Numbered from the stretch's first letter, positions 3,937-49,211 are shown. The stretch is DNA of 64,000 bases from Takakia lepidozioides (GCA_030704615.1 CM060731.1:37882001-37946000), one strand, 5' to 3'. Numbers and translations are program-made. The notes: generated by a model from the letters alone, not told the origin.

Positions 3937-6900
3937 ATGACCACACTGCTGAGGCGAGCATGGGCGTCACTGCTGCACGCATCAATGATGTCCGAAGGAA
4001 CTGCACAAGACACAACGGACAACTCCGAACTACCACTGGTGCACAAGCTTCCCAAGGACCTTCTGTGCGTGGTTTTAACGAAACTCGGGGCTGCAGACCT
4101 TGCCGCAGCCAGTGTTGTTTGCCGAGCCTGGCATGCTGTGGCGAGTAGCGATTCACTGTGGGAAGGGGTGCTGGCTGCTGAGGCTGGGGAGCTATGGCCC
4201 TCCGTGCTCTTCTTTGAGAGTTTCTTGCGGCCTGGCTTCGCATTGAGGTAACTGTTGAACGTCACATGACGAGTGTGGGACGAGTCTGTGAGTTGTTCTT
4301 TTCTGGGTCTGCATTGTCTATGTCCGTATCTTAGCGTCGAAGTTCATAGTCCAGGTTTGTTACTGTGGTTGGTTTCGGGCTTATGGGGCCGTGAGTAAGA
4401 GGGGAGGGTGAGCAAGTACACCCTTTTAGTACCGTTTTCTAGCCTCGATGCTCGTTGAGTTGGGTCCAGAAGACACTTCCAGTGTATTGTATGATGCTCA
4501 ATGAATGGGAGTATGTGATATTATTGCGGTTGGACTCCTGGGGTGCACCATGTTCTGAAAGTTGACCGTCTGCCTGGTTTACATATTTCCTCGTGAGTAA
4601 GGGAACGTGTGTAGTGTAAAGGTCAGCTGTTCCTCTTCCTTTTCCTGGGGACAAGCCACAAATGTAATCGTTTTTCTTATGTAAGATGTCTGCTCAAGAG
4701 TTGCTATAACCACGAAGCACCTATTGCCAAGAGCCATCAATAAAATTCATGCTCAACCAGAGGACAGGAAGACACTTCCTGTTAGGCAGGCTACTGAACT
4801 ATAGTGAGGTATACAAGTTGTATAATTGGTGCAGTATTTATCTCACGTTTTTCCAGCACTCTTAAAGGGCCTCTGTTGTGACAATGTTGTCTCACATCAG
4901 ATTCAGGACCAATGAAATTCCCGACAGAGTTTGAACAATTTACCACACTTAATTTTATTCAAATATCGAACCTTTACTGTCCTGCGGATACATTGTGCAT
5001 GATTTCCATGCCGGACGCTGGTTGTCTCACTTTTTGTTCTTTGAGCACTTAGGATAGATAGGAGGGTGGCGGTGATGTGGTATGCCATGGACATGGCTAA
5101 GGGTGGAGCATATGGCAGGTCATCTGTGAAAACCTGCCCTCTGCCGTTCCGGCTCATTCACAGCCAACGCATCGTGCTTCCACTCTGTATCGTAATTGAT
5201 GGTCAGTTTGCTCATTCTTGTCCCTCTCTACTGCCCCTACAAACCCCCCTAATCTCACTGTTTTTGCATTCACTTCATTTTAAAAACATCCTATTCTTCT
5301 TCTATTGTCTTAACATGTGTCAAGTTCTATACACTTACTTCCTACTTGTCATCTATCACAGGCTTCTCAAAGTTCCTGACCCTTTACCTTCTGTGTCTTT
5401 CTATCTTCGCCCTACTTCCGCAATTTAAGAATGTTTTTGCAGTTAGTCTTGTTCCTTCAAGGGCTCCATAAAGTTTGCAACTTGTGTTTGTTCATCTGGC
5501 TTAGACCTGAGAACATTTGAAAAACGTTTGCATCTCTATGAAATCCGTATGAACACTGAAGGATTGGGGTGATGGTGTGACGGGTGAAGGGGGCTCTGGG
5601 TATTGCAAGTTTGGTTGGGGCAACCGTCCGGCACCTCAGGACAGGCTTGCCCCTTTTATGGTATGTTTTTCTGTGCAAGAGGAACTGTTAAAACCGTGGA
5701 GATGGATCAAACTGAGGGGAGGGACAGAATATTCTTCAGAAGCAAGAGAAACCTGTGAAGGACTGGGAAGGAGTGGCCAGAACGTGAAGCATTCAGCAAA
5801 CATGTGTGCTAGAATAGAGACCACGTTTGTTTATTACAGTCTTATGTATCTATCACTTGATCACCCAAGTGTAGTTTAATTTGAGACACCAGTGTAATTC
5901 ATTTCTAGGCTGTGCGTTTGAAATTATAAGCTTCAGGAGAGTGATAAGATCTCTCTAAACAGTAGTAGATGTACGTAGTAGTCAGAGGTGGAAGAATTCA
6001 ATATTGGGGTGGATGTGACAGGAGTTTGGGAATATTGAGTCACCCATATGTGCATGCTTGAGGGATCTTTTCACAGCGATCTTTGCTCGGTTTGCTACTC
6101 ACCTGGCCATCTGAACTTCATAATATTGGTAGCCTAAACTTTCTATGATTTGAACTGAGTTCTGTTTCTTTATATGTACTGTCTCCGGCTGGTCTTTCCT
6201 TCTGACTATTCTGTATCAAGCTTGTGGGGTGGGTCACAGCATGCGTGTGAAGCCAACAGCTCAGCCTGTTATGCTCACATCACCAATTTGCCACTCTGAT
6301 GGTTGGTGGCCTCCCCAACTTTCCCTCCTCTTTGCATCTTTAGTTTGTTGACATCCTGTAAAGTACAGATTTCTGGCAGTTGCCATGGGGAAGTGGAGAG
6401 ACTCAGGTTACAGCCCCATAGTGACTTCCTGTACCGGATGTGGATGGGAGCAGATACAGAAATTGCATTGGCTGCAAGGCGCCAGCTGCGTGAGACTACC
6501 TTTTCGGTCCTATTTGAGCTTGGTGTGCCAGCTGTTTGTGCTGTGGATCAGGTAGTAGCTTCTGTTATACCTATTGAAATTTGACATACCTGGATGGGCC
6601 TATTTTGACTACAACTAGTTGTGAGCAGCTTTATGATGGAAGCTGTGGGTAGTGGATATGTAGAGCTGTACTCAGCTGCCATTTACATTTCCTTGACTGG
6701 AGAGTCCCCTGGGCATATAAAACTCAGTCCAAATATGCCATACTGCTTGTGCACAGCAGATGAGGACCTGGTCATGGAAATTGAGAATTGATGGATGTAT
6801 ACTCAGGCAGTTACTATATACTATAGACCATTAGGTTGGGCACTGGTACTGCTGCCTTAGGAATCTGGCTGGAAATTCATGTGACAAAATTTCACTCTGG

Positions 6901-8935
6901 TTGCATTGCATGTTATGCTGTCAAAATAAAACTGCAGACAGAGGGTGTGTTTCAGAGGTTGCATCTTCTTTCAATTGCAAAGGAATTCAGCTTTCACAGA
7001 ACCAAGGAAAAAGGAAAAAGGCAAGAGAGAGAGATTGTACTCATAAGACGTTGTTTGCCGTAGCCTTCTGGCCATTGACCCCGCGCCCAGTTTGAGCGGG
7101 AACAAAAGGGACAGAACCTACCTCTGTCAGGGGCTGACGTTGGTAGTGTGACTTACCATCATATATAGAATTAATCCGGGTTTTCCAGATATCCTCTAGA
7201 AATCCCTTCACTCAAGCATCAATCTGCTGTGTGTGATTTGCCCAAAAACTAGGCTCAGGAGGGCCTGGGTTTTTGGCCAAGCCTCGAGACTTTCAAAGTG
7301 TTGTTTAAACAGGGGTACAGGCACAATTCCCTTGATAGAATTGAAGGAGAGAGTGTCTCTTTGGTGAGAGACCCAGGACAGTGTATCAGAAAGTGAATAC
7401 TGTCTCAGGATGTTCCACACAGCGGGCAATTGCACTCTCCCTTTCCTCTCGCTTAGGTTTGCTGTTCAAAGGTAGGATTCCTGCCCTGAGTTAAATCTCA
7501 GTCTAGTGCCGAGAGTGGGTAGACCCTTGAGGTCATCCAAGATGTCTCCCCCTGTCACTGACTGGAAACAAGTTCAGGGAAGTTTTCTGCCTAACTCATT
7601 CTCATCAGACAATCTCATGGCAACAGACATGGCTGAGGACACTACAGCCTCTAAGTCAGATTTACCAGCAGGGTCAAGACTTGCGGATCAGGTCCAGGTC
7701 CTTGAGAATCTCTTTACTCTCTTCTGCCAGGACTTAGCCTGTTTGACAGGGCGGTCCTGTTTTCCAAGATATAGAGTCGATTAACTTAGGATATCTGGTG
7801 TTGGGCATATGTTGCAGCTGACCCCACCATCTGACCTTGAATTATCTCGTCGGGAGCTTAAGGACACAGAATGCCAAACTCACCCCCGAACAGCCACATT
7901 GGCTGTTTTGGAGCATGCTGACATACACCTCCTTAAGCACCCCCACTGAATGGATTCTAGAGACTTAGCCTGGTTGGAGTTATCAACCCATATAGCAGAT
8001 CCGTACTCCAAGGCAGGTCTAATAACGCGACAAAGCATGGCTTCTTAACCTCAGAGTGACCTCTGCAGTGGAAAAATTTAGTGAGCCCCAGAGCTTTGCC
8101 CTTGCAGTTTGAACAACTTTCCGGATAGTGCATCCAATTACAATTGGTGGAAAACTCAACGCCCAGGTAAGTGTAGGAAGGAGGACCGGGATCTCTTGGC
8201 TACCCCACTGCCACTAAGATCACTTCCTCCCTCTCCTCTGTCGTTGAATGCTACCACTGCACAATTGCTGACATTAGCCTCTAGCCCCACAAAGATCAAA
8301 GTATCTCTTCGGCAATCATTTCAATCAAACCTGGAGATTGGTTGGGATCGTCTCCCTATGCTTGCGAAGTCATCTGCCCAAACATTAAGGGCTGGTATGG
8401 TGGTATCACCCACCCTTAAACCAAACAAATCCCTCACTCCACATCCTCGAGGAGGTGATTGATGATGAAAACATTGAAGAGCAGAGGGGAAGAGAGTACA
8501 TCCTTGAGCTCTCACCTTGGTCTATGTCAAGAAGTTGGACTCTTGTCCGTTAAACATGAGCAAACAGCGTTGTGTGTGAGTGTGAGCATACAAGCTGTGG
8601 ACAAAACTCTCCACATCTTTCCCTTGATCCCACAAGACCAGAGGCGGAAACCATAGGCCATCTCTCCACACTGTGTCGTAAGCCTTTTTGACACTCCAGG
8701 AGAAAAGACATAAGTGGGTTTCCCTTCTTTTTCCTTCCCCGGATAATCTGCGTCTTGTAGAGTGAAGATATATCCACACAGCCCTGTTGTTCGCCGAAAG
8801 CTCCAGATTTGGCCGTCGTGGAAAAACCTCTAGACTCTCAGCTGCAACCTCGAGACGAGTGACTTATAACTCTGCAGAATGTCTTGCCAACGCATTGAGG
8901 AGCGTGATGCAAGAGAGAAGGAGAGAGAGGAGAGA

Positions 8936-8974
<39 letters not shown>

Positions 8975-9042
8975 TGATGTTGTATCATAAGACGTTGTTT
9001 GCCATAGCCTTGTGGCCATTGACCCCGCGCCCAGTTTGAGCG

Positions 9043-9076
<34 letters not shown>

Positions 9077-12000
9077 GGGGGGGGTATATAAGAGAGGATG
9101 TACTCATTAGAGGTCATTCACTCCAGCCATGTGGCCATAGATGCTGCACCCCGTCTGTATGCAGCAGAGAGTGAAGAGTGTCTTGACAGATTCGTGTCAT
9201 TTCCATTTGAATACATGGTGTTGGCAAATGTGCTGATTATATTTTTCAAATCACTGCTTGAACAAGTTAATGGTGATGGGGGGCAGGCAGTCTTGGCACT
9301 CTATGCTGCGGGGCACACATCAGGCATAGCAGTGAACATTGGCTTCAATGTCACATCGATTGTGCCCAGTAAGTGATTTTTGAGTAAGTTGATATATTTG
9401 TAATATTGACAGTGAGGTAGGGATCCTTTGCCAGAGAGAAGTTATATTTACTTTCATGGTGCTTTGTCTAGTTTGTTGATATGCAGCAGCAGCATTGCTT
9501 TTAGCATCTTTTGTCACCCCTTTATTGTTTTGGTGTAGCTAATGTCTCAAACTGGTAGCAGTATAGGGGGTGGAAAATGAGCTGGATAATATGAGGGCAT
9601 TTTGATGGGTGTCTCATCAATAAGGAATCCTATCTTTGACACTATAGAGCCTCCAAAAACAGAGGTAAAGTTTGAAAAGCCTTTTTGGAGACTATATAAT
9701 TCACCTGGTTTCTATACTCCTTATTGCAGTCTAGGGGCCTTAACTTTTGCGATGGGAGAATGTCAAACAAGACAGTTGCTCATAACAGGGTTGGCTGAGG
9801 GGCAGTGCAGTTTTGCATGGAAAAGTGATGAGAAATGTCGGAGTGGAGATAGTGGAGCAAGGTTCTATGCATATTACTGTCTATCTCAGTCAGCTCATCC
9901 AGCAAAAGGGCACGACGCAGTTTGCATCCATGTACACAGCTCGCACCCTGAAAGAGGTGCCCCTCTTAGTTCCGTTCTTTCTTGCTTCTCTTGTTTTTCT
10001 GTCTGTGCCTACCTAGTGTCTAATGCTTGGTATCTATTGTTTGTGCATGTTCTGTTGTGTCTGTTAAGGCATACATATATCTCTCTCATTCTCTCTTTCT
10101 GTGCAATGGTAGCACGCCTGACTCCAAATCAGAAGGTTGCGTGTTCGATTCATGTCAGGCTCAAACCCCCAAAGTACCGTCCCCCACGCTTCTGCCGACG
10201 AGTCAAAAGCTTTTATTAACAGTAAGAGATCTGTAAAACGTATAATTCGAAAGCGCATAGAAAAATTCCAGAGGGAAGAGGTCTAGATAGAATATGTCCA
10301 GGCCGAGGTTCTCCCACCCTTTAATTGTTCCAAGATCTACCCTCTTGCTTGGGTGATGCAAGAAGAGTGGTTGACAGAGCTGTGGACTCTTGGGAGAGTT
10401 TCATCACTTCTGTGGCTGACAAGATTATTGGAGTGCAACTAATTGTATGCAGAAGAGCAGTAAATTGATGGACCAATGAGATCAAGCTTAAGATGGCTGA
10501 GAGATGGGTGCTTTATAGGGGCTGCTAAAGATGACAGACAACTGTGGTCTAGATATAACCAGCTGCAAAAAGAGGCCCTTCCCCTCTTGAACTTTATTTG
10601 GAAGACTGAAGGGATCCTCTTTCGCTGGAGAGAGGGTATCATTGTCAACCTGTATAAGAAAGGTGACAGAGAAGAGCTTGGGAAGTACTGTGGCATTACC
10701 CTTCTTAGTGCAGTTGGCAAGCTTTGTAGGATAGTAAGTACCCGTTGATTTGGAGTCTAGAAGTGTTTTCTATAAAGGTGAGGCTGGCTTTCAAAGAAAT
10801 AGGTCTGTGTTGACCAAATCTTTACCCTAAGCCAGTTGAAGGGAAAAAGAAGGAGAACCCACCTTTGTCCTCTTGCTGGATGTAATAACATCTTATGACA
10901 CAGAAGTGCAACGGCTGTGGCTTCGTCTGTTGTCTTCTGGGATCAGGCCAAAGATGTGGAGGATGATCCACAACCTGTATTTGAACACCAGAAGTTGTTT
11001 TATGGTCATTGGCCAGAAGTCTAATTTCTTTGAAATTGACCAAGGTGTAGCGCAAGGTTGTACCCTCTCCCCACTGCTCTTCGATGTTTTCAATAATCAG
11101 CTCCTTGAAGATGTGGAAAGCATGGGGATTTGGGTTAAAGGTGGGTGATGCCACCATACCAGCTCTTATGTTTGCGGATGACTTTGTGGGCCTAGGGGAT
11201 ACACCAAGAGTGGATTGATTGTGTCAAGAGGTACCTTGACCTGTGGAGGCTAGAAGCCAATCTTAGTAAATGAGCGGTGACTTGGAGGCTGAAGTGTTGA
11301 AGGCCCCATAGCGGAAGCACGTAGGATGTCCAAACAAAACGAAGTTAGGCATAAAACTTCCCTGAACTTGTTTCCAGTTTGTGACATGGGTGAGGACCTG
11401 AAGGATGATCTGAAGGGCCTACCTACCCTCAGCACTAGACTGAAACTCAGGGCGGGGAGTCTACCGTTGAACCAGAGCAGAGAGGAAAGGTAGCTTGTCA
11501 ATGCCCGATTTTCCGGGCGGCCTGAACACAATATCCATTTTTTGATACAATGTCCAGGGTATCCTTATTCAACCCTGTTCAGAACCATCAAGAACATAGT
11601 CCCTTCACCTCTGTTCATCGACTCTCACAATCATGAGGCTGAGCCTAAAGCCCTGGCCCTGATGGGTCTAATTGCTGGGCAGTTCACACAATGATGCTTG
11701 TGTGAAGGGATTGTGCGAAGGGATTTCTAGAGGAAACCCGGAACGCCTGATCCAATTGTTTATACCAAGGTAAGTCCCACTACTGGAGTGAGCCCCTCAC
11801 AAAGTTAGTGTCTGTTCCCTCTTGTTCCATGAGACCTGGGCGCGGGGTCTGTGCGCCCAAGGCTACGGCAAACAACGTCTCGTGAGAACATTCTCTATCA
11901 CCTCTCTCACTTTTCAAGGGAATGGGGAGGTATCCCAAGTCATACTTTATAGAGCAAAGACTTCATGACAACTTGGGCAAGCCATGGGATGCCAACACAA

Positions 12001-14071
12001 AACAGGGAAAGGGGGCAGAGGACAGGCCTGGTGAGGGTGGTCAAGCAAACCATCTTCCTAGAAGTCAACCCCAGGAGAAGGGGACATGATGCAGAAGCCA
12101 TAGATGCCATCATAAAGCTCTCAAAGTGATGAGATTGTCTCATCTCTCCCTCTCGTGTCAGGCCGCAAGGCTACAGCTAACAACGTGTTCTGAGCACATG
12201 TCTCTCTGTGTTGTTCTGCCCAAACTGGGCACGGGGTCTATGGTCTCTGTTTCTTCTCCTACCGAGTGTAACTATGAAATATAGGGAGACACTGCTGTCT
12301 TTCGGGGCTGCCCATCCTAGGAGAGCTTTTAACCTTTATGAGGCAGCTTTGTCTTCGAATCGTGATTCAGTTTCTGTATGTGTTATAAGTTTGTCCCATA
12401 AGCGCTTGGGCTTCCTGCTGTACCTGCAGAAGCCACCCGGCACTTTAACATTGTGAGGCAGACCTAGTAGCTTTTTGGACTTTCGACCGATGTTATGATG
12501 GTTGTTTGTGTTCTTTAACTTTCCCCACTGCCAGTCACATGATACATCTTTGTGTGGTGGATTCATCTCTATGTTAAAATGGAAGCTGGGTGCAAGATCT
12601 TTGGCCACAAGGCCATTCTTGCAGTCTTCTTGAGGACATTTTCTCTCCTCACAAGTGAAGGCTCAAGTCAGGTGTGCTTGCAATGATTTGGGCAGAAACT
12701 ATGCTACGTAGCACAAGACTTCGCGGCAGAGCTGAACAAGGACTGTGAGTCATCATGCTCAATGGGGCAGGAGGGTATTGCCACACTAGACAAAGAGCGT
12801 TTCTGCGCCCCGGAGATATTGTTTCAGCCTCGCCTGGGTGGCCTGTATGTTTCTCATCCATATCATGAGAGGAGATGTTGTTTTGTATGGTTTTGACACT
12901 TGAGAAAGTTTAGCAAACAGATCGTTGTATTCACTGCAAGCAAGTCTAACCCAGAGAAGTCCCAACACATGCATGATGAACGGTTTGTTGGCCCTGGCTT
13001 AATGTTTTCACTCAACTTATTAACTTAAAGGGATATATGGAATGATAAAACAAATGTTAGACAGTGTCAAGAGCGTTTACATGACTGTCTCTGTATGTTT
13101 TTGTTGACTTACAAGAGAACAGCAGCTGGGCAGGGCCTGCAAGTATCCCTTGCATTGTGTCATCTTTCTCCAGTTTGGCTTAAATTGTCAAGATAACACT
13201 TGTGAAAGTTTGTAGCTCACTTGGCGACTGGGATGGGTAGGCGCACGATGGGGCTACAGCAAGCAGTGGCCCTCTGTGTCAAACATTGCTCACGCCTTCC
13301 TCTAGACAAGCCCCCGATTGTGAACTGGTTCAAAACCATTGTATTGGCGGGTGGTACTGCCTGCCTTCCTGGCTTATCAGGTTTTGAGCTCTACCATCCA
13401 TGTCGAGCCTGTTTGACTGGGGATGATGCTGTATGCCCCTCTTCTTACTTTCTACAAAAAGGGATAACTGCAGGAAGCAGTGGTGATTGAGTGGAAGGTT
13501 AGAAGAAACAGTTGTATACATCATTTTATGACGTGAAATGGTCAACCAATCTGATGTGAATTGTTTCAGAGAGGCTGGGAGGAGAATTGAGGAAGACATT
13601 GCGAAGCTCTCTCTCAAGTGGCATCACCATTATCCCTCCTCAAGGACCTTCTTCTGCTTGGTTTGGAGCCTCGCTTCTGAGCAAGGTAAAGTCACTGCCC
13701 TTCACATCCCTCTGTTTTGACTTTGTTTGTGGGAATGCGAAAAACATGTGACACAAACTTACAAAGTTACAGCCATATAGCCTAGCCAGGGCCGAGTGGC
13801 TAAACTATTGTATGAAAAGCAGTGTTTTCGCACCATGTCACAAGGTGTATGGTTCATGTACCAGATTATTTTGGAAATGCTACTCCATGGAAAAACCTTT
13901 ATGAGATTTCAGGGTTGTGGAATCCTGTTGGTTGTTGGTTCCCTGATATCTCATATGGAGATGGTGTGACACGTGCAGCTAAGCACTTTCCAGCAGGCCT
14001 GGTGTGTGACGAAGAACCAGTTTCGACAGTACGGCATTAGTGTTGTTCATGCTTATGATGAGCAGCTGTGA
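3937..14071 (+). CDS. ARP8: Plant actin-related protein 8 (N-terminal F-box + actin fold), 12 exons
   Basis: Hand-spliced exons 3937-4247, 5119-5201, 5590-5660, 6022-6089, 6240-6301, 6454-6551, 9287-9368, 9811-9956, 12696-12844, 13241-13380, 13570-13685, 13979-14071. All introns are GT-AG and phase-compatible. The protein has an F-box (LPKDLLCVVL..VCRAWHAVASSDSLW), then IVIDGGSGYCKFGW, EFGNIESP, VPAVCAVDQAVLALYAAGHTSGIAVNIGF, LHGKVMRNVGVE, TLKEKLCYVA, EILFQPRL and WFKTIVLAGGTACLPGLSERL, collinear with plant ARP8. Confidence 0.93.
7020..8830 (-). mobile_element. Degenerate RTE-like LINE fragment in ARP8 intron 6
   Basis: Broken RT motifs (KKAYDTVWRDGLW, AQGCTL). The 3' terminus 'gagagagagattgtactcataagacgttgtttgccgtagcc' at ~7024 is shared with other copies in the window. 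Confidence 0.72.
8915..9075 (-). repeat. (GA)n microsatellite containing a ~75-bp LINE 3'-end fragment
   Basis: GA runs flank 'tcataagacgttgtttgccatagccttgtggccattgaccccgcgcccagtttgagcgggaa', which nearly matches 7040-7102. Confidence 0.85.
10101..10163 (+). pseudogene. tRNA-Trp(CCA)-derived sequence (pseudo-tRNA or SINE head)
   Basis: gcaatggtagcacgcctgactCCAaatcagaaggttgcgtgttcgattcatgtcaggctca matches the eukaryotic tRNA-Trp body, with a B-box GTTCGATTC. The 5' acceptor-stem strand is replaced by CT repeats. Confidence 0.8.
10260..11910 (+). mobile_element. Degenerate RTE-like LINE fragment in ARP8 intron 8 (same family as 7020-8830)
   Basis: WREGIIVNLYKKGD..YCGITLLS, QGVAQGCTLSPLLF and atgtttgcggatgac (MFADD). 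It ends in 'ggctacggcaaacaacgtctcgtgagaacattctct..ctctctc'. Confidence 0.78.
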
Positions 14072-36144: not shown

Positions 36145-37338
36145 ATGTTCTCCAGAGGGTAAGTGAGGGAGAGCGTGGGTGGGTTCAGGGCAGGAAAAGC
36201 AAGGCTGCCTAGATGAGATGAGTAGTAGGTAGGTGTGTAGGAAGAATATAGCAATACAACCTCGCAGCCTCGCTTTTCGTTGTTGCGCAAGGGGGCTGGC
36301 TAGGGCGTCCCATTATGGTGATTGATGCTCACTAGCTATGCATCAGTGTAACCCTATTTTGAGAAAATCATGTGAGCAACCAGCATCGCTCTATTGATGC
36401 GGTTGGTAGCCTCTTGAAACCTTCTTGTCTTTTGGGGTCCTCAATTAAGCTTGTCTGGATCTGTTATGTGTAGTGTAGTGTAGGGATGTTTGAAAAACAG
36501 AGGGAGGAAGAACGTGTGCTTGAGAATTCAGGCTTGAGTCAGGGAGGGGGAGGGTAAAAACACATATTGACTGGTGGGTGGGATGTTGTTGGGGCTGGAA
36601 TGAAGGACATATTGGGGGGGTGCGGATGCATACGAGGTGGGGTCCAAAAGGCAGCGCCTGATTGATGGGAGCGCCACGCTGCTGCTGGGGCAGCCTAGGC
36701 CGCTGCCAGTAGTGCGCTTGCGGGGGCTGCCCTTTAACTGTAGCGAGAGTGATGTGTTTGAGTTCTTTGCGGGGCTGGATGTGGTGGATGTGCTGCTGGT
36801 GCGCAAGCACGGCCGCTTCTCAGGTGAAGCATTTGTAGTGTTCGGTGCCCCCATGCAGGTGGACTTCGCGCTGCAGAAAAATCGTCACAACATGGGGCGG
36901 CGCTACATTGAGGTCTTCCGATGCAAGAAGCAAGACTACTACCACGCTGTCGCTGCAGACGTGGCGGAACCCAAATCAGAGGATAGCCTCCCTCTCCCCA
37001 TGCCCAGCATCACTTCAAGTGGTGGAGGCAAGCTTCCCTCTGAGAAAGATCATCTGGAACACACCGGTGTCTTGAAACTCAGAGGTCTTCCTTTCTCTGC
37101 ATCCAAGCGTGACGTAATGGAATTTTTCAGGGGGTTCGTGCTCTCGGAGGAGAATGTGCACATTGTGGTACATGGTGATGGGCGAGCCACCGGAGAAGCC
37201 TTCGTTGAATTTAACAGCCCCGGCGAGTCGAAGGCTGCGATGAACAAGGACAAGATGACTCTGGGAAGTCGGTATGTGGAGCTCTTTCCGTCCTCGCGAG
37301 ATGATGCTGCACGCACTGCCAACAAGCAAAGATTATGA
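36145..37338 (+). CDS. hnRNP F/H-like RNA-binding protein with two quasi-RRMs
   Basis: Micro-exon 36145-36158 (ATG TTC TCC AGA GG|gtaagt) joins 36606-37338, giving MFSRGTYWGGADAYEVGSKRQRLID. The two qRRMs read VVRLRGLPF..GEAFV..MGRRYIEVF and VLKLRGLPF..GEAFVEF..LGSRYVELF. A possible extra in-frame upstream exon lies at 35774-35799. Confidence 0.92.
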
Positions 37339-38789: not shown

Positions 38790-41700
38790 ATGGAGAACGA
38801 TGCCTTCCTCCGCTTTGTGGACACGGCTCGCACTACACTCACGGACGCTGTGGCCGTGGAGAAGAGGAAGCAGGTGCCCAGCTGGGGTTGGGTGTGCTGG
38901 CGCTTGCTGACTTGCTGCAGGGCCTACCCAAGTGGCGTCACCCCTGCCATCCTTCTCTCCGATCTCTTCCAGGTCCTACTTCTCTTGCTACCTACATTTG
39001 TGTGAAGGGAAGTGCAGGCACAATGTGTGTGTGCCTAACTCCCTGCCCTTTGTTTCACTGGGCCATGGAAGAATCTTCTCATTCATTCTAGTTTGTTTCT
39101 GGTAGACTTGAAGTTTTGGTGTGCGTGTATGGGTTTAGTAGAATAAGTGGTATGGATTCCCTTAGTACGGGGGCTCCTTTGCTGACGCATAGTTGTAGGA
39201 CCGCAGTGCAATTGAGACTGTACTTCATGCCAATGCGGCAATTCTGCTGGTGTCCACACAGTACAATGCGGTCTGAGCTTTCATCAAGGTATCATTCCTT
39301 CCGCAGGGGAGATACAGATGGAGATGACAGGGAAATTAGTGGGTCATTATTGCTGCAGGGTTGGTTTGAGAGGGAAAGAGTGGAGGGATGCTGGAAAGGG
39401 GAAAACAAAGATGCAACCGACCCCAGAAGTATGCTACAGCTGAAGAAGCAAAAGCAGCAGTGGCTACGCCTTCAAAACATGACCACCATTGACTCTATAC
39501 TTGAAAAGAAATTTGTGTCCCTGGATGCAGTGCTGGAGGTCGTTATCCTTGACGTTCACCTTCTTCCTGGTACTTTTCGTTCTTTTACCCTGTCTTGCTC
39601 TCCTACCTTCTGTTTTTGTTGCCCAGATTCATACGTGAATTTCCAGGAGACCACCTTCCATCTACCATATCTTTGCATAGAAGATCCGCAGGTGGCACGT
39701 GCACATACATGGCAAGTGGCAAATGAAACAAGTATGCTTGCAGGAACCAGCAGCTACATGTTGACTCTCGGCGACGCTTGGAGCTCTAGCACTATTGACC
39801 TTTATCTGCATCGCAAGTAAGCCGCAGCTTCCTTTCGTCTCAATTTCCTATCTGTGTCCGTTCCATTGGCATCCACAACTCCTGAATGACTGGGATCTTT
39901 CTGGCTTTGATTCTGTCAACTCGTCTCCATTATTGCAACAGAGACATGGTCAGGAACCACAGGAATAGTTGGTATGGTCATGTCTTCAACTAATTTGGTT
40001 CGGCGAATTCAATTGGAGCCAAAGAATCTGCAGTTTCCCTTTGTCGCTATTTCCTATCTTCTGTCCTTCCCTGCATCATCTCCCTTTCTGTCCTTGGCTT
40101 GACTACCATAACCTCCCCATGGATGGGATCTTTCTGGATATAAATTGCTTCAACTCTGCCCCCAATTACTTCTGTCATGCAACAGAGACATAGTGGTACC
40201 ATCAGGAATCATCATTAAACGTCTTGGGAATTAGCTCTTGTCATGATAATCCATAATGAAGCGCTTGGCTTCTTGTTTCATCTTTTCAGTACGTTTCTTG
40301 GAGAGAGGATCATTTGATTGCCTAATTGAGGAGCTTTTGCATGCATGCAGGTTTTATGACCTGCTACACCCCCATCCTGGGATTCTTAAGAGTGGTCGGG
40401 AGATTCGGTTGGCAGGTTGCCGCCTACGATCAGCTCCAGGGTTGGCCCACCTACGCCTCCTTCCCACCGAATTACTGGTTATTTTGTTGGACGAGGTCTC
40501 TCTCTTATGGATTACCTGCTGTCTAGTTGTAGGAATAGTGCTGTCTTATGGAGGAAAAATTTGCAGTTTCACTCTGGGAACATGTCTCCTTTCGAAGTCA
40601 GCTCTGTTATTGCTTCCAACACAGTGTATCTATTTTTCAGTAAATCACACTCCTTGTCAGATATCCCCAGCTTAGTCATGCAGGTATCGTCCTGGTTCTT
40701 GAAGGGAAGGCAGGTAAGCCTGCTTGAGCTGTGATAAAGGCAGTTAATGGGGAGGAGCTCATATATTGAACAGGAGCAAGAGGATGACGCTGTGCTGCTG
40801 GGTGCCAAGTTCTGTTCCGACACCTTTGCCAGCATTCAGCTCGAGTCTGTTGAGAATGGCCTCGATTACTGCTTCTATGCTAGGTTCTCTTCTTCATCAC
40901 TAAGAGTCGGTTCCAAAGTGTGTGGAGTGCTTATGTCACTTCCATGGGATTTCAAGCTCTCATGTCTCTGGTCATCTTAGGAGATTGTACAGACTACAGT
41001 GCCTCGGTGTTGAGCTCTGAATTGATGGAGTATGAAGAAGATGGGGTTGCTTGAGCATTTGGATGTGAGTTCTGTGCTACATATATGCTCGGCAGAGAAT
41101 AAGAGAGGTGAACATGGGCAGGTTGGATAAGAAAGGGGAGGTGGAGATGCAAGGGCAGCGGAACCATGTGAAGCAGCAACTCATGACACTGTGTGATGAT
41201 GCTGGTGACGCCCTACCGCTAGTGCTTTGGGACGATCAGATTGCTGTCTCCAATCTCTTGAGGTATGCCACTGTGCAAGGAAGTTAGCAGACAATCTACA
41301 TAAAATAGTTTGTTAATACATTGAGGTTACCACGGGGTTTTCACCAATGTCTGCAATATCATCTGGCTGTTTATCTTCGTTTATAAACAGCTAAATCTGA
41401 AATAGAAAAGGGAAAGGGCATAGAGAGTGAAGGTGTATTCTCTTCTCAACATCATTTCACCCACCTTACATTCCATGGAATTGTATGGGGAGGGGAGCCA
41501 AGGGCAGTGAAGGGAGCATGGTGGCAATTGAGCGACCATTCATTGCACGCGATTCCGACTGTGGTCCTCAAACAGGGACCCATTTTTGTCTGGAGTATGG
41601 GAGTGCTACCCGCCTCTATACCCTCCCTTACATCCCCACCGAGGAGCAGGTGCCATCATGTCCAGCCCCATATCCACAACCTTGATATTGTGAAAAGTTG

Positions 41701-44700
41701 TTTTCTTTATCAATCTCAGACTCGACAACCCGTTTTCACGTAATGCTGCTATCCCATTGCCAATCATAATTGTTGGCTCCTTATGTCCATCCACAGAAAG
41801 ATGTCACATAAACTTTAAAATCCCAATGTTTGGCTTTGGGCTATCCGGGAAGAAGCTGGGCGTGGGTACCCATGAAAGCTTAGCATGTCACAATTGCAGC
41901 AACCTTGTATCTTTCCAAGTCCTGTTTAGCAAAAAGGTTTGCTTGCCTTTGAAATCATCTATCTTGAAATGATGTAAGTGGGATAGGTCAGAAGATGATT
42001 TCTATGATTGATAGCTGTAGGTGTCTTGAGCCTAAACATGAATCTGGGACTTGAATTGAAGGTGACAATCGCTGGCACCCAACATTTGAAGACAATGAAC
42101 CAGATGGAAGGCTGGCGCACTGCTAAAGAGGAGGGCCAGAGAGATGACGTGTCACAAGTCGTGCTTCCTCGTGATTCTCAAGGCTCTGTGGACTTCAACA
42201 GCTTTCCCTTTCGGGTTGTCAAGCATTCCCCGAAAGCTCACCGGTCATTGCTGCTTCAAGAACATAGTGTCGAGAAAGTGGACAAAGAATGTACTCATAA
42301 GACATTGGTCGCTGTTGAAAGGGTCGAGTAGTGGGTGCAGCATTGGGACTTCCAGGAGGTCACCTATCCGCGAAAGTGGAAAAAAAGGAGGAGGGTTGAA
42401 GGTAGATGTTTTTGTTGACTGTTGTAGCGTTTCTGTGGTTTGTGCAGTTGTTAGTGGGACATTTGCAACCGAAGATGTCAAATGTAGCCCTGTATGCACT
42501 TGTCACTTTGGTGGTTCCTGAACTTGTCATGCATGCTGGGAAGCAAAAGACAAAACACACCTCTGCTTTCCTATTGAGGCTCCAAGATCCCACTGGCCAC
42601 GTGGTTGTCAAGATGCACTTCATTGATCGCTGGTATGCCTCCATCAACACTGCGCTTTGCCCCCGAGTCGATATCTGCAAAGCCAAATATTCTGTCTGCT
42701 GTCTGTGGGAAGATATAGCTTGCAGGCCACTCACTAGTGCACTGCGCAAATTTTTATCTGCAAGTTCTCGTGGGTTCCTGCTGTAGGTCTGGTGGAGAGA
42801 TATGTGCCGGTCACCTGATCTTTATTGCTGGCCTCACCACCTTTGTTAATAAAGATGGCAGGTATGCTTTCCACCCCTTTCTCTAAGTTGATTTTGGGCT
42901 GCTGCTGAGGGCCCCACTCTCTTTCTTGTATCCTGCTTGCTTTTGTCGCATAAGCTCTTTGAGCTTTCTGCAGATGTCGTAAAGTGTCTTTCTTCTTTGT
43001 TTCTCTCTTTCTATGTCATTGCCTTTTCGCCGTACCAAAGTCTGCCATCCCAACCATTCCCCCTTGCCTTCATAGGAAAACTGAGGGATGAGCTTGGATA
43101 ACCTTTGTAAGACATAAGTTTTTCAGCATAAGCCCTCATATTTCTAGAGTTGATAAGTAGTGAAATATATAACTCTGGATTGTGGTGGATGGGTGGCCAA
43201 GGGTGGAGGGCGGTTGGCAGGAGAAGGACATTGGGGCCAGGCTGGTAAACATTACACAGCTACCTGCCCTATTGTCATCTGCAACACTTCACCATGTTGT
43301 TCCACTGTCTTGCCTTTCTTCGTCCTGTCTGACCAACAATGTAAGTTCATATGTCAGATGTCCTACGTGGTGCTGTGTACTTGCCTGCAGTGAATGCATT
43401 TGATTTATAGCTCAAAAGCACAATTTGCAAACCAACATGTTTGTCAAAGATTGCCTACATGCTGAAAGCCCAGAAAGAAGACAGGGGGGGCGGGGTTGAC
43501 AATATGGGAAACAAGGAGGCATGGACGGGGGATAGGTTTCTTTCTTGCTCTGGATAGAATCCATTCCCTACTGGATTTTATCCCGGATCATCTTGAACAA
43601 ACAACGAAATAGAACCTCCAATCTACAAGGGCTGATTCATGCTCTTCTCAATCCGGTGTTGCATTGGTGTTGATGTCCATGTATAATTAGTCTTCTCTGG
43701 CCTTCATTTCCATGTGTGTGTCATGACTCAACTCCAATGCATCTTTAGTAATATAACCTGCATCCTACAAAGAGTTGCTTCATGTTCTTCTCAGTGTTGT
43801 GTTGGTGTTGATTTTCATATATGTTAGTCCTCCTGGCCTTCATCCATGTGCAAGTTTGTCGTGACTCAACTCCAATGCGTCTTTGATCTGGCCAGTTGCG
43901 TATGTTTTCACCTCATGGTTTTTCCACACAACATCCAGCCCAACCATGTGATTTGACTGACAGAATTTCTTGAGCCACATGGAATGGGTGTAATAGTAAC
44001 CAAAAACAAGTGTATGGGAGGACAGGTGTGCCGAGTGCGCATAGGCAAGCTAGGGCTGGAGAATGTGAGAGTGAGGCCCTCACATGCGGCATGTGGCAGA
44101 AGCCTCCAGCAGCCTGATCATGGTCTCTGTGCCTTCTGTGGAGGCCCTTGTGATGGCCAAGAGGTGGTCCCTCATTTTGTGCTGCACACTGCGTTGCATG
44201 ATCCTCTGGAGGTTGGAGTTGAAGTGTGGGTCAGGTGTGCAGGACAGGCTGCTGCAGAAATAATGCAAGCCTGCCCACAGGACTTTTGCTCTTGGCCTGA
44301 GGTATGTGCATATGTTCAGTAAGCTATTTCCCAACCCCTTCTTATTTGAAACAAGCAGCATGACTTGCATCTGTATTGTCTCGGGATGCGAAATGAGGAA
44401 AAATCAGCAGTAAGGTAAGAATGTATAGACACCTAGGCACTTCGCTGATAGAGAGCATGGGACATGCCATCCTGATATAAAACTAGAGCTTAAGGCCTAG
44501 ACCTTCCGTTGCAATGGATCATCACAGTTGGAGGAGGGTCAGAGTCAATATCTCTCTCTGCAGCACCATGAGGAGAAATGAAATGAAATGAAATGGTGCT
44601 TTATAACGTCCGCGGAAAGCTCGTAGAGCTTATGGGACAAAATGGAAGAAAACATGAGAGAGGAACAAATCCAGAAACCACAATTAATGTTCTAGCGCTT

Positions 44701-46872
44701 GTCTAAGGGTGAAGGCCTCGTGTAGGTAGGCTGCCACGCATTTTTGATCCTCATAGTGAAAGACATCAGTGAGAGTTTGGGTTCCACTGAATTAACAGTG
44801 GAATCTCCCACGGATCTCGTAGTATAGAGGGCAGTAGAAGAAGAAGTGTTCTTCAGTTTCAATTTCCTTGCTGCGCCCTATGCAAGCTGGACATAGGCGG
44901 TCCTCCCGTTGCAGGGTTTCCCATCTGCCAGTCTCTATCCGTAGGTTGTGGGAACCCACCCTCAACAGCCCCAATGCCCTCAAGAGGGAAGGAGATAAGG
45001 GTGCTGAAAGGTAATTTGGTCTCAAGATTCTATCATCGCGGAGCACCAAGAATGTCTCTCGATAGAAGTGGAGCTTTGTCGTGAGATTGGGTAGCATCCA
45101 AGTTCTCTTGACATGTACTTCCATAAGCTCTCTCCGAATGAGTCTGTTGCGGTCATGTCTGGATGTGATGTCCACCTCATCTGGGTTCATTGGTAATAGG
45201 AAAGCAGTAGAAAGTCCGTTACGTTGAAATAAACTGTCCACTCGAGCATACCAGGAGTTCCTGAAACCTGCAGCTTTGAGCCTCATAGATGTTGTGAGGG
45301 CCCTTGCCACTAGCCCTTTGGGTGGAAGGGCCTGCAATCTGTGGAGAAAGATTGTAAGCCTGAAGAGGACCTCAGATTGCAATGGTACACATGCGAACTC
45401 GGCACCTAGGATCTGAGATGGAGTTGTGCTCCTGGCGCCAAGCATTGCTTGGAGAAAAGATGACTGTAATGGTTCCAAATTCTTTTCCCACCAGGAGACA
45501 GGGACACCAGGTGCCCAGAACTCACAACCATAGATGGTAGCAGGGCTGACGACGGTGTCAAACAGCCACTTTTTGGTCGGGGGATGCCGCAGATGTATTT
45601 GCTTGCATTTGGCCTGAAGGCGGACGGAGGCCGCCTTACCTTTAGTCAACCTGTCCAAGGCAGTGGCTGCAAAGTGAAACTTGGGGGAGTGGATAACCAG
45701 ACCTAGGTACCGGTATGATTTCACAATCTCAATTTCCTGCTGGTTGAAGATGAATCTACGATCAGCCTGGTCATTGAAGACCATGATCTTGGTCTTGCTA
45801 AGATTGACCTGCATCCCATAGTCTTTGCAGAACTGTTCCAAAATTTTGAGATGGCGTTGCAGAAAGACCGGGGATTGTGCCAAAAGGGCAACATCATCAG
45901 CATAGAGGAGATCTGATTGGGTTGGTCCCCCATCCAATGAGACCCCAACCCCATGGTTTTTTGATATGTAATTCTCCAAGGTGTCAATGTAGATCCCGAA
46001 CAGGGTAGGTGAAAGGGGGCAGCCCTGTTTGACTCCAATGTTGCTGTGGATCTCGGCTGAGAATTCACCAGCGACGTTGACCATGCCAGTGACAATCTCA
46101 TACATAGAAGAGATGGCACAAAGGATGTCTGGAGGGACTTCCACTCTATGGAGCCGTTGGAAGAGAAGGTCCCGAGGAACTGAATCAAAGGCTTTGTGAA
46201 AGTCCACGAAGCAAACATAGACCATTCTTTTGTCATAGCGTGCACTTTCCACCATAACCTGAAGAGTGAAGATGTGGTCAATAGTGGATCGGTTTCGACG
46301 GAAACCAGCCTGTCCCTCAGCACGAATGCGAGAGTACTCAGCCCAATCATCCAGTTCCATGGCCACTACTGCCCCAAACAGTTTAGCAAGTAATGAGGAC
46401 ACCATGATAGTACGATAGTTTGTCGGTGCGAGCCTGTCACCGCTCTTAAAAAGTGGGTGGATGATGCTCTTTGTCCACTCTGTTGGAAAGCCCCGTTGCA
46501 CCACCTCATTGAAGAGAAATGAAATGAAACGAAATGTACTTTATAACCTCCGCGGAAGGCTCAAAGAGCTTATTGGACAAAATGGAAAAAACATGAGGAA
46601 ACAAAACCAGAGCCAAAAAACAGCCCAAAAGCAACTACTGCTGTAAGATGTTGATGACTGTTATATCTTTGCAATGTGGAATGGTGCAGGAGGAGCAGGC
46701 GATGTATATGTACAGCCTGGAGAATGAGGAGTTTGTAGTGGTATTGTATCTTGGGTTGGAAGATGACTTTGATGGGCCTCCATCTGCCACTATTCCTCCT
46801 TCCCAATTGCAATTAACCTCCTGGACAATGGGCAATGCCCTGAAGATTGATCTGCACCACCCTTCCTTTTGA
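38790..46872 (+). CDS. Plant nucleic-acid-binding OB-fold protein (AT3G17030-like, CDC24 OB-domain family), 13 exons
   Basis: Exons 38790-38972, 39359-39569, 39744-39816, 40351-40495, 40774-40883, 41122-41262, 41508-41649, 42062-42214, 42448-42632, 42787-42861, 43202-43340, 44026-44301, 46690-46872 are GT-AG and phase-compatible. Motifs include AYPSGVTPAILLSDL, TIDSILEKKF, LGDAWSSSTIDLYLHR, RLLPTELLVILLDE, DDAVLLGAKFCSD and CLEYGSATRLY. The family assignment is from recall. Confidence 0.82.
44571..46510 (-). mobile_element. 5'-truncated RTE/RTEX-like LINE in the last intron of the OB-fold gene
   Basis: ORF 44792-46504 (570 aa) contains NYRTI, QAGFR, FVDFHKAFD, KQGCPLSP, LLYADD, YLG and C-terminal LRIETGRW..RLCPAC..ETEEHF..CP. 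The 3' tail is (CATTT)n, seen as gaaatgaaatgaaatgaaatg at 44576-44595. Confidence 0.9.
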
Positions 46873-47316: not shown

Positions 47317-49211
47317 ATGATCTGCCTATCCTGGAACCGTCCTTCTTCCAAGGATCAGGCATCTTGCCTTGCCCGATGCAAGTAAAGCCATTCTGAACCT
47401 TGCTCTTCTACTTCTGCACTTTGCTGATCCTCTCAATTTCTCTTCCCTTGCTCCGGGGGCCTGCTGGGCACGCCCCCCGTGATAACAATTGCCGTTCTGT
47501 ACTTCATGATTTCGGGAAGTTCAAGTTCTTGCCAGTCTTCCTTTGTTCCCTTGTAGATTCCCCGTCTGTGTTTTTGCTGCCACTCATTTAATAGTAGACT
47601 TTACTCCCCTGGGGCTATGTATGTCTAGAAACAATGATTTAGCTCGATGGATTGTGGTAAGGTAAGCCAAAACCCACTTTCTGCTCATTATGATTTCGGG
47701 AAGTTCTTACCAGTCTTCCTTTGTTCTCTTGGAGATGGGCTGTCTGCCTTGTGCTGCCACACATTTTATAGTAGCTTCCCTGAGGGCCATGTATGTTTAA
47801 AAGAAGGATTTAGTTCGATGGATTGTGGTAAGCCCATACCCAGTTGCCAAATCTCTCTCTGTCACTTTTGGTTTTTGTATTGGCAGGGTAGGTGCTTTCA
47901 ACTATGACTCGAAGTATGTGGCAGCCACAAGGGAGGCGCCATTTTCTGAGGACCATCTGGAAAACCTGAATAAGGATGGCTATGTCATCAATCATGCGAA
48001 GGTGAAGCTTGGATCCGGGCGTGATACATTTGTGAGAGGAAAACAGTTGCTTGAGAAATGGGGGTAGGTGCTCGCTTCCCAACTTTATGTAATGTCCGTC
48101 TCTGATGTCGCGACCTCTTGAAACGTTTCTCGGCTACGTTTGGACCTGAAAATGGGCCTAGTGGATGTGACATGGTCGCTTGGTTTCCTTGCCTACCCCG
48201 ATCTCCTCCTCATAATCGGGAGTTTACTGAGCGTGATAAGCATAACCTCACTTTGAGGTCATGGATGATGGTGGATGCGCAGGCAATTTCAGCTGGGCTG
48301 GGCATCGGTAGAGGCAAGCACCCCCATCAAGCAGGGAAGCCAGTTCTGTGTGTGCAGCCGCGAGCTGGCGGCATGGATCATTAACCCATTGCAGATCCTG
48401 TATGTAGCTTGCAAGGAGTATCCACCTGGTTCCCCCTCCATGGGACTACCTCGAAATGCCCAGCAACAACAGGCAACATTTGCCTTCGGAAGTGGGACTC
48501 TCAAAGGCCATTTGCTGGTACTCTCTCTCTCTCTTTACCCCTTCTCTATGGCCTTGGCCTTGGTATAGGCCACAAAGCGCTGGCAAACAATGCCTTATGA
48601 GTACATTACCCTTCTCTTCACCCCCTTAAACGTAATACCACACAAAGCTCCGGGAGGGGCAGTTTCCCAGGGGGTCAGGCTCTGGTAAGCTAAACTTCGC
48701 TGATGGGATGAATACATTCTCTCTCTTTACCCCTTTTCTTTCAACCAAACCAGGCGAAGGCTAGGTGCACACAAGGCAAAAGCAGTCGGATAAGTACATA
48801 ACAGTTTGACAGCGTGTCTTCGAGTTTGTTGGTGCACTGAATTGTAGCTGCTCAAGTTTTATGGAAAAGTGCGCATGTATTGTTTCCCTGTAAGGTTAGG
48901 GTAAAATAGGAGTAGTAACTTATTAAGCAAGAAAAGATGACAGTAAGCCTCGGATTCATGTTTGAATCTTTTCTTGTGTGCTCACATTGATACACGTGCT
49001 TGAAATTGTTGCATTGCAGGCCGGAGAAGAAAGATTTTCAGTTGAATGGAGGGATGATGACAGTGTGTGGTATGAGATACTTTCTTTTTCAAAGCCTGTT
49101 CACTTTTTATCAATTGTAGGATACCCAATTGCTCGCCATAAACAGAAGCTTTTTGCAATGCAATCAACTGCAGCAATGGTGCAAGCTGTGGCTAGGGAGA
49201 CCTTAGGATGA
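47317..49211 (+). CDS. UPF0548 / DUF1990 family protein (At2g17695-like)
   Basis: Exons 47317-47381, 47887-48063, 48283-48517, 49020-49211 read MICLSWNRPS..GAFNYD..GYVINHAKVKLGSG..FGSGTLKGHLLAGEERFS..VWYEILSFSKP..GYP. Confidence 0.88.

Follow-up and report, generated by a model that had tools for sequence, protein, structure and literature searches.

G-rich 3' splice sites in introns of a 64-kb window of the Takakia lepidozioides genome

Do the ordinary introns of the early-diverging moss lineage represented by Takakia lepidozioides carry the pyrimidine tract that usually precedes the 3' splice site? We addressed this question in a stretch of 64,000 nucleotides (GCA_030704615.1 CM060731.1:37882001-37946000), referred to below as the window. 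A first-pass annotation, made from the sequence alone, had claimed that intron polarity is inverted here, with G-rich acceptors lacking a polypyrimidine tract and with the pyrimidine tract placed behind the 5' splice site, and had inferred that many 3' splice sites in this lineage are recognized by a different rule. Our analysis confirmed the observation, while the proposed interpretation was only partly supported. Intron ends may therefore be recognized differently here than in flowering plants.

We first examined whether the junctions are correct. Every acceptor and donor string listed in the first-pass annotation is present at its coordinates. Spliced transcript contigs of 1925 nt and 1796 nt, obtained from two public runs in two studies and aligned with positions 4900-10899, skip exactly six introns of the ARP8 gene, all of which are GT..AG, with zero depth in several intron bins. 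A seventh acceptor (5118) is supported only indirectly: the depth in bin 5100-5299 fits coverage beginning at 5119, and the contig has about 396 nt upstream of that point, which fits an F-box exon ending at donor 4248. An in-frame ATG lies just upstream of this acceptor, but the possibility that it is a start codon was rejected because of this additional upstream transcript. A further 19 introns are pinned by protein homology, reading frame (checked on joined translations) and Pfam profile coordinates. The introns and related features are as follows.

4248..5118, plus strand: ARP8 intron after the F-box exon, acceptor ...gggtggagcatatggcAG; indirect support only (frame, F-box Pfam hit, and the length and depth of the contigs)
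5202..5589, plus strand: ARP8 intron with a CU-rich 5' end, acceptor ggggtgatggtgtgacgggtgaAG (G 0.59); spliced contigs of both runs
5661..6021, plus strand: ARP8 intron, acceptor ttggggtggatgtgacAG; spliced contigs
6090..6239, plus strand: ARP8 intron with a CTGAC branch-like motif at -35, then gtggggtgggtcacAG; spliced contigs and motif listing
6302..6453, plus strand: ARP8 intron with a CU-rich 5' end, acceptor ggatgtggatgggagcAG; spliced contigs
6552..9286, plus strand: ARP8 intron holding a high-copy repeat, acceptor tggtgatggggggcAG; spliced contigs
9369..9810, plus strand: ARP8 intron, acceptor ggttggctgaggggcagtgcAG; spliced contigs
9957..12695, plus strand: ARP8 intron with a CU-rich 5' end, acceptor atttgggcAG; frame, and a downstream exon (from 12696) aligning from its first residue to actin KLCYVALDF
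12845..13240, plus strand: ARP8 intron, acceptor ctgggatgggtAG; frame, actin homology and donor choice
13381..13569, plus strand: ARP8 intron with the least G-rich acceptor of the set (G 0.18, pyrimidines 0.55); frame, actin homology and donor choice
13686..13978, plus strand: ARP8 intron, acceptor ggagatggtgtgacacgtgcAG; frame, and a downstream exon (from 13979) matching actin LSTFQQMW
20638..22056, plus strand: TBL (PMR5N/PC-esterase) intron with a very CU-rich 5' end and a GU-rich acceptor, with a pyrimidine stretch further upstream; tblastn with TBL homologues, and frame
36570..36605, plus strand: G-run tract and GAAG acceptor of the hnRNP F/H-like gene; pinned by a stop codon 3 nt upstream of the acceptor and conserved residues just downstream
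38973..39358, plus strand: CDC24-OB gene intron 1; best junction against six homologues, as for introns 2 to 12 below
39570..39743, plus strand: CDC24-OB gene intron 2, CU-rich 5' end
39817..40350, plus strand: CDC24-OB gene intron 3
40496..40773, plus strand: CDC24-OB gene intron 4, acceptor atggggaggagctcatatattgaacAG
40884..41121, plus strand: CDC24-OB gene intron 5, purine-rich acceptor (pyrimidines 0.18)
41263..41507, plus strand: CDC24-OB gene intron 6, acceptor tatggggaggggagccaagggcAG (G 0.59)
41650..42061, plus strand: CDC24-OB gene intron 7, the least certain junction, with a small score margin over alternatives
42215..42447, plus strand: CDC24-OB gene intron 8, GU-rich acceptor; donor 42215 or 42218
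42633..42786, plus strand: CDC24-OB gene intron 9, among the most pyrimidine-rich acceptors here (0.59)
42862..43201, plus strand: CDC24-OB gene intron 10, acceptor ttgtggtggatgggtggccaAG
43341..44025, plus strand: CDC24-OB gene intron 11, acceptor gtgtatgggaggacAG; donor 43341 or 43353
44302..46689, plus strand: CDC24-OB gene intron 12, holding a reverse-transcriptase ORF on the minus strand
48064..48282, plus strand: DUF1990/UPF0548 intron, acceptor ggatgatggtggatgcgcAG; frame and contiguous DUF1990 profile coordinates (14-42, 44-105 and 106-156)
48518..49019, plus strand: DUF1990/UPF0548 intron with a 5' end of 96% pyrimidine at +7..+30; pinned by the same profile coordinates

The base composition of 26 introns was then compared with that of their own interiors. 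At positions -25..-4, the G content is 0.38 against 0.23 in the interior (Wilcoxon p=2e-5) and the pyrimidine content is 0.40 against 0.51 (p=0.002); 23 of the 26 introns have more G at these positions than in their own interior, and none reaches 60% pyrimidine. At the donor side (+7..+30) pyrimidines make up 0.67 against 0.51 (p=1e-4). GGG lies in the last 28 nt of 17 of 23 introns, against 0.29 expected (p=1.4e-5), but is depleted at the 5' end (1/23), whereas pyrimidine runs of 6 or more occur in 1/23 introns at the 3' end and 12/23 at the 5' end, against 0.26 expected. TGGG lies in the last 26 nt of 15 of 23 introns (5.9-fold enrichment), and ATGGG is enriched 12-fold. The positional profile is sharp: G peaks at 0.48 and C falls to 0.07 at -15..-11, while at +7..+16 C is 0.30-0.36 and G 0.13-0.14. 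These values come from five plus-strand genes of a single window, with 6 or 7 introns supported by RNA. Pfam scans of 20 further ORFs, intended to provide minus-strand genes as an orientation control, revealed only transposon ORFs on that strand.

The choice of introns did not create the pattern. The first-pass annotation listed only 6 of the 12 CDC24-OB acceptors (40773, 41121, 41507, 43201, 44025 and 46689), and the six unlisted ones are also pyrimidine-poor (0.36-0.59); the inverted composition holds for every intron of two whole genes. The TBL acceptor, which had been described as conventional, has only 45% pyrimidine at -25..-4; its pyrimidine stretch lies further upstream.

In their core features these elements are ordinary U2-type introns, as all 26 modelled introns are GT-AG, but they lack a polypyrimidine tract before the AG. 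A YTNAY motif at -13..-55, scored on sequence alone, is found in about 13 of 23 introns. None of the donors matches the [AG]TATCC consensus of U12-type introns, which also lack a pyrimidine tract. G-quadruplex formation at the acceptors was likewise rejected, because a two-tier motif occurs in only 4 of 26 introns and a three-tier motif in 1. Recent gain, as expected for introners or transposon-derived introns, is contradicted by the conserved exon sizes of the CDC24-OB gene (73, 145, 110, 141, 142, 75, 139, 276), which match the Trapa and/or Marchantia orthologues, and by the absence of complementarity between intron ends.

The conserved positions of the CDC24-OB introns permitted a direct comparison of orthologous acceptors. 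In the angiosperm Trapa they are U-rich (G 0.09, T 0.46), while in Marchantia they are GU-rich (G 0.29) and only 1 of 13 reaches 60% pyrimidine. The signal therefore changed in place, and a lineage-level change in 3' splice-site context is the natural reading. However, the premise of the first-pass annotation that land-plant acceptors are U-rich does not hold for the Marchantia orthologue, which is intermediate, and the contrast with bryophytes is one of degree. No moss orthologue of this many-intron gene was found: the representative hits and a full-length search gave lycophytes, Marchantia and seed plants, of which the Diphasiastrum locus could not be spliced exactly and the Selaginella protein is not on record. 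The hnRNP F/H acceptor, which had been included in the pattern, does not count as evidence for a lineage rule and is gene-specific, because the orthologous acceptor carries G-runs in Sphagnum, Physcomitrium and Marchantia, and also in Amborella, inside a U-rich tract.

How, then, might such intron ends be recognized? The analysis itself establishes that (i) the roughly 20 nt before a (G/U)GCAG acceptor followed by G are C-poor, rich in G-runs and UGG, and devoid of a polypyrimidine tract, (ii) the first 30-40 nt after a weakly consensus donor are C/U-rich and G-poor, (iii) the introns are ancient and positionally conserved, their composition having changed in place in this lineage, and (iv) the two tracts occur independently of each other. 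What follows is inferred. The tracts may act as separate protein-read intronic enhancers, in which the 3' G-runs would recruit a G-tract or UG-binding protein, e.g. an hnRNP F/H-type qRRM protein, that would help U2AF35 and U2 at acceptors that depend on the AG because the pyrimidine tract is weak, while the 5' CU tract would recruit a UBP1/RBP45/47 (TIA-1-like) or PTB-type protein that helps U1 at weak donors. Auxiliary signals are plausible, since donors often carry pyrimidines at +3..+6 and 15 of 26 acceptors are GCAG, and a candidate reader, the hnRNP F/H-like protein conserved across land plants, is encoded in the window; its binding and any dependence of splicing on it are part of the inference, and the identity of the trans-factor is a guess. 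G-richness continues into the first 20 nt of exons (0.33-0.41), so that part of the signal may be a junction-spanning compositional patch rather than a discrete intronic element. The intermediate state of Marchantia fits gradual drift as well as selection, and in mammals G-run enhancers sit mostly near the 5' splice site, where G-runs are depleted here. A YTNAY branch-site motif, moreover, is found in only about half of the introns. We consider this the most likely mechanism, but hold it only tentatively.

A less likely alternative is that the pattern is a neutral or mutational by-product. In this view the polypyrimidine tract decayed because 3' splice-site recognition in this lineage tolerates its loss, relying on the AG context, the branch site and exonic enhancers, and a local strand-asymmetric substitution bias around exon boundaries left G-rich acceptor flanks and CU-rich donor flanks with no function of their own. 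The G-rich patch indeed spans the acceptor into the exon, the CU-rich patch begins in the last 20 nt of exons, T at the acceptor equals the interior level (0.28), as if a tract was lost rather than replaced, Marchantia is intermediate, and the plus strand shows positive GC skew over most of the window. On the other hand, the G peak is narrow (-20..-6) and coincides with the drop in C, pyrimidine runs at acceptors are depleted below the level of the same introns' interiors, GGG and TGGG are 3-6-fold enriched, 23 of 26 introns exceed their own interior in G, and a transcription-wide skew would not produce opposite biases at the two ends of one intron.

It is also possible, though unlikely, that the large U2AF subunit, a paralogue or a PUF60-like factor has shifted its RNA preference from U-rich to G/U-rich in this lineage, in which case the G/UGG tract would be the functional equivalent of the polypyrimidine tract, read by the canonical machinery. 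The tract sits where U2AF65 binds, in the last ~20 nt before the AG, it is U-containing and G-rich (T 0.27-0.30) rather than pure G, and the GU-rich acceptors of Marchantia suggest a graded shift. However, no U2AF gene lies in the window, and the specificity of the U2AF65 RRMs for U is generally described as highly conserved across eukaryotes.

RNA structure, one of the three mechanisms proposed in the first-pass annotation together with a G-tract binder and an altered U2AF, is not supported and appears very unlikely. In this reading the C/U-rich 5' end would pair with the G-rich 3' end and bridge the splice sites. The two ends are complementary in composition, mismatched 5'-3' duplexes being about 1.6 kcal/mol more stable than random interior pairs, and a precedent exists in teleost (AC)m-(GT)n introns that do not need U2AF2 (PMC4691745). 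Nevertheless, the duplex energy of 40-mers from matching 5' and 3' ends (-13.9 kcal/mol) equals that of random interior pairs (-13.9) and is weaker than that of mismatched pairs (-15.6), with the same result for 60-mers; whole-intron MFE folds pair the two ends no more than when the 3' end is swapped with that of another intron (9.2 against 11.0 pairs); 5' CCC and 3' GGG do not co-occur (5 of 25, odds ratio 0.14); and several G-rich acceptors belong to introns whose 5' ends are not CU-rich (5661, 9369, 41263). Finally, although 19 of the 26 junctions rest on homology and frame only, and one junction (41650-42061) and two donors are uncertain, a gene-model artefact concealing normal acceptors elsewhere is hardly credible, because the six junctions exact in spliced contigs are among the most G-rich (G 0.36-0.59), the DUF1990 junctions are fixed by contiguous profile coordinates and acceptor 36605 by the nearby stop codon.

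Literature searches revealed no description of G-rich acceptors in bryophytes, but several systems are comparable in part. The teleost (AC)m-(GT)n introns (Lin et al. 2016, PMC4691745) are GT-AG introns with distinct, compositionally complementary tracts at opposite ends and a GU-type, non-pyrimidine 3' end, and are the published precedent for splicing without the interaction of U2AF2 with the polypyrimidine tract; in Takakia, by contrast, the tracts are not simple repeats, matching ends are not specifically complementary, the tracts do not co-occur, and nearly every intron examined is affected rather than a roughly 10% subclass. Mammalian G-triplet enhancers read by hnRNP F/H, and human introns structured by 5' GGG and 3' CCC (PMC4691745, citing McCullough and Berget 2000), share the strong enrichment of GGG close to splice sites, and a conserved hnRNP F/H-like protein is encoded in this genome, but the polarity is opposite: in humans G triplets lie in the first 40 nt and C triplets in the last 40 nt, whereas here CCC and pyrimidine runs follow the donor and GGG precedes the acceptor, and human introns also keep a pyrimidine tract.

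AG-dependent introns, which rely on U2AF35, resemble the introns described here in their weak or absent pyrimidine tract and well-conserved AG context (GCAG in 15 of 26, often followed by G, with a short AG-free zone upstream, median 20 nt), but in the known cases the tract is merely short or interrupted, is not replaced by G-runs, and characterizes a minority class rather than the norm. Fungal introns reportedly carry the pyrimidine tract between the 5' splice site and the branch point (Kupfer et al. 2004), i.e. enrichment likewise lies on the 5' side, but they are very short with a strong branch-site consensus, whereas the introns here are 150-2700 nt, have a loose branch motif and also carry a G-rich 3' element. 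Introns of flowering plants are reported to be recognized through distributed UA/U-rich signals rather than a strict pyrimidine tract, U-rich elements near the 5' splice site being functional (Goodall and Filipowicz 1989, cited in PMC8831610); the interiors of the introns analyzed here are not AU-rich (about 45% GC) and the acceptor flank is G-rich, while the Trapa orthologue shows the classical pattern (T 0.46-0.55, G 0.02-0.12).

A more far-reaching possibility, compatible with the data but doubtful at present, is that this moss lineage has, genome-wide, replaced polypyrimidine-tract recognition of 3' splice sites with recognition of a G-run/UGG element and moved its pyrimidine signal to the 5' end of introns. 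It would be the first land-plant lineage known whose default intron architecture does not rest on the interaction of U2AF65 with pyrimidines, with Marchantia-like GU-rich acceptors as an evolutionary intermediate.

The polypyrimidine tract and its reader U2AF65 are treated as near-universal parts of 3' splice-site definition in plants and animals, and a land plant whose ordinary, ancient introns carry G-runs in this position would be a natural experiment on how core splicing signals are replaced without the loss of introns. Gene finders and splice predictors trained on flowering plants would misjudge acceptors in this genome. The series from Trapa through Marchantia to this genome suggests that the change can be traced across bryophytes.

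The DNA analyzed (64 kb, with a G+C content of about 46%) carries plant genes on the plus strand. The genes and other elements identified are as follows:
3.9-14.1 kb, plus strand: F-box plus actin-related gene, of the plant ARP8 type
20-23 kb, plus strand: TBL gene
36.6-37.3 kb, plus strand: hnRNP F/H-like gene
38.8-46.9 kb, plus strand: gene with the three CDC24 OB domains (the "OB-fold gene" of the first-pass annotation; here, the OB gene)
47.8-49.2 kb, plus strand: DUF1990/UPF0548 gene
27096-34261, minus strand: LINE-type ORFs (RVT_1, zf-RVT, zf-CCHC), occupying about 7 kb between the TBL and hnRNP genes
44792-46504, minus strand: a second reverse-transcriptase ORF, antisense within intron 12 of the OB gene

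The best protein matches are those of Sphagnum, at 81% for hnRNP F/H and 59% for TBL, while Marchantia is at 73% and Physcomitrium at 70%. We infer that the DNA comes from an early-diverging moss that is not Sphagnum itself.

In order to verify the predicted splice sites, we used two small public sequencing runs, originating from two studies, which contained 13% of the sampled words of region 5000-14000, i.e. about the exon share. When mapped onto 4900-10899, each run contributed one long contig (1925 nt and 1796 nt). The contigs have no mismatches on the listed exon pieces and skip exactly 5202-5589, 5661-6021, 6090-6239, 6302-6453, 6552-9286 and 9369-9810. All six skipped segments are GT..AG, and several intron bins have zero depth. 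This exon-only coverage shows that the contigs represent transcripts, although the run records do not specify RNA. The depth in bin 5100-5299 fits coverage beginning at 5119, and the roughly 396 upstream nucleotides of the contig fit an F-box exon ending at donor 4248, so that acceptor 5118 is supported indirectly and direct RNA support covers six introns. One of the two runs (X1) also contains a 253-nt contig lying wholly inside the CU-rich part of ARP8 intron 5202-5589, which may be an unspliced precursor fragment or a stable intron-derived RNA. In addition, a repeat located at 7000-8900, inside ARP8 intron 6552-9286, has a contig depth in the thousands in both runs, with many variant contigs and rearranged joints; it looks like a highly expressed or high-copy transposon family.

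The remaining junctions rest on homology, reading frame and profile coordinates, with exons searched singly and joined translations computed separately. The four 3′ introns of ARP8 follow from the frame and from actin homology, since the exons at 12696 and 13979 align to actin from their first residue. For the OB gene, homologues were retrieved and every in-frame GT/GC...AG combination was scored against six of them: all six acceptors listed in the first-pass annotation were the top choice, and six further introns were defined. The acceptor of the hnRNP gene is fixed by a stop codon 3 nt upstream of the AG, and the two DUF1990 introns are fixed by contiguous profile coordinates (14-42, 44-105 and 106-156). 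In total, 26 complete introns plus the hnRNP acceptor were defined, all of them from five plus-strand genes of a single window, with no minus-strand gene available as an orientation control.

The composition of these introns is unusual, and this holds without selecting introns. On the acceptor side (positions -25..-4), G is 0.38 compared with 0.23 in the interiors of the same introns (Wilcoxon p=2e-5), and pyrimidines are 0.40 compared with 0.51 (p=0.002). In 5-nt bins, G peaks at 0.48 at -15..-11, where C falls to 0.07. GGG lies in the last 28 nt of 17 of 23 introns, against 0.29 expected (p=1.4e-5), and TGGG lies there in 15 of 23, against 0.16 expected. No intron reaches 60% pyrimidine at -25..-4, and the six OB-gene acceptors omitted from the first-pass annotation are also pyrimidine-poor (0.36-0.59). 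On the donor side, pyrimidines at +7..+30 are 0.67 compared with 0.51 in the interior (p=1e-4), with C of 0.30-0.36 and G of 0.13-0.14 at +7..+16. Pyrimidine runs of 6 or more occur in 1 of 23 introns at the 3′ end and in 12 of 23 at the 5′ end, against 0.26 expected. The observation made in the first-pass annotation is confirmed.

The core signals were also inspected. The donors are weak, and many of them (e.g. 9957, 38973, 40496, 40884 and 48518) depart from GTAAGT/GTATGT and carry pyrimidines from +3 (GTGCCC, GTCCTA, GTCTCT, GTTCTC, GTACTC), which means that the CU tract starts inside the U1-pairing region. Of the 26 acceptors, 15 are GCAG, and the nearest upstream AG lies at a median distance of 20 nt. 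A loose YTNAY motif is seen in about half of the introns. The composition patches straddle the junctions: the last 20 nt of the exons flanking the 26 introns are C/T-rich (C 0.32-0.34), and the first 20 nt of exons are G-rich (0.33-0.41).

To determine whether the pattern is specific to this lineage, the OB-gene orthologues of Marchantia polymorpha and of the angiosperm Trapa were retrieved and spliced exactly from their own proteins. Exon sizes of 73, 145, 110, 141, 142, 75, 139 and 276 in the window match one or both orthologues, which indicates that these are the same ancient introns. At -25..-4, G is 0.38 in the window, 0.29 in Marchantia and 0.09 in Trapa, and pyrimidines are 0.40, 0.53 and 0.67, respectively. 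Comparison of the window with Marchantia gives p=0.018 for G and p=0.0008 for pyrimidines, and comparison with Trapa gives p of about 1e-6 for G. GGG near the acceptor occurs in 18 of 25 window acceptors (23 introns plus the hnRNP and 48282 acceptors), in 3 of 13 in Marchantia and in 0 of 12 in Trapa. The signal therefore changed in place. The 13 introns of the Marchantia orthologue (locus L003) are already GU-rich at their acceptors (G 0.29, T 0.36 at -25..-4), with only 1 of 13 reaching 60% pyrimidine, so the baseline assumed in the first-pass annotation, that land-plant acceptors are U-rich, fits angiosperms better than bryophytes. Weak pyrimidine tracts may be a wider bryophyte trait. The three Sphagnum introns and one Physcomitrium intron examined are too few to place those mosses, although one Sphagnum TBL acceptor carries TGGGTGGGA. 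The acceptor of Sphagnum TBL intron 2 (locus L007, about 4280-4305; ...cttgggtgggaccacAG) carries the same TGGG-type tract as the window acceptors, hinting that the trait is shared with Sphagnum.

One of the cases listed in the first-pass annotation does not constitute evidence for a lineage-level change. The intron-1 acceptor of the hnRNP F/H-like gene, which precedes its main exon (window 36570-36605; comparison loci L006, about 1980-2024; L008, about 2055-2099; L009, about 2837-2881; L010, about 1947-1991), is a weak GAAG preceded by G-runs in this genome and also in Sphagnum, Physcomitrium and Marchantia, while in Amborella the G-runs sit inside a U-rich tract. It looks like a conserved, gene-specific element, and we infer that it may allow autoregulation by a G-tract-binding protein.

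The possible mechanisms were then considered. Our best reading is that two independent elements read by proteins compensate for the weak core sites: (i) a 3′ G-run/UGG enhancer at AG-dependent acceptors and (ii) a 5′ CU-tract enhancer. The composition of the intron ends and its change in place are results of the analysis, whereas the enhancer function of the tracts and their binding by proteins are inferred, as is the identity of the readers, for which hnRNP F/H-type qRRM proteins, an altered U2AF65, and UBP1/RBP45/47 or PTB-type proteins are candidates. Among the alternatives, it is possible that the pattern is a neutral compositional by-product, a reading supported by the extension of the G-rich patch into exons and by the intermediate state of Marchantia. 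A shifted RNA preference of U2AF65 is a further, less likely, alternative. Structure bridging, in which the CU-rich 5′ end pairs with the G-rich 3′ end as in teleost AC/GT introns (PMC4691745), is not supported. Matching 40-mer duplexes average -13.9 kcal/mol, which equals random interior pairs (-13.9) and is weaker than mismatched 5′-3′ pairs (-15.6), and 60-mers give the same answer. Whole-intron folds pair the two ends no more than when the 3′ end is swapped with that of another intron, and 5′ CCC and 3′ GGG co-occur in only 5 of 25 introns (odds ratio 0.14). G-quadruplex motifs are rare (4 of 26), and no donor is of the U12 type. An artefact of the gene models is the least likely of the alternatives.

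Literature searches found no description of G-rich acceptors in bryophytes, although subscription papers were incompletely covered and a prior description cannot be excluded. Human structured introns show the opposite polarity, with GGG in the first 40 nt and CCC in the last 40 nt (PMC4691745, section 10). Teleost AC/GT introns share the non-pyrimidine 3′ end, but they depend on complementarity that is absent here. Fungal introns with 5′-side pyrimidine tracts and AG-dependent mammalian introns resemble single aspects of the introns described here.

The interpretation proposed in the first-pass annotation, that this lineage recognizes many 3′ splice sites through a G-tract binder, an altered U2AF or RNA structure, is thus supported only in part: RNA structure is disfavoured and any protein reader is inferred, but a lineage-level change in intron-end signals is real.
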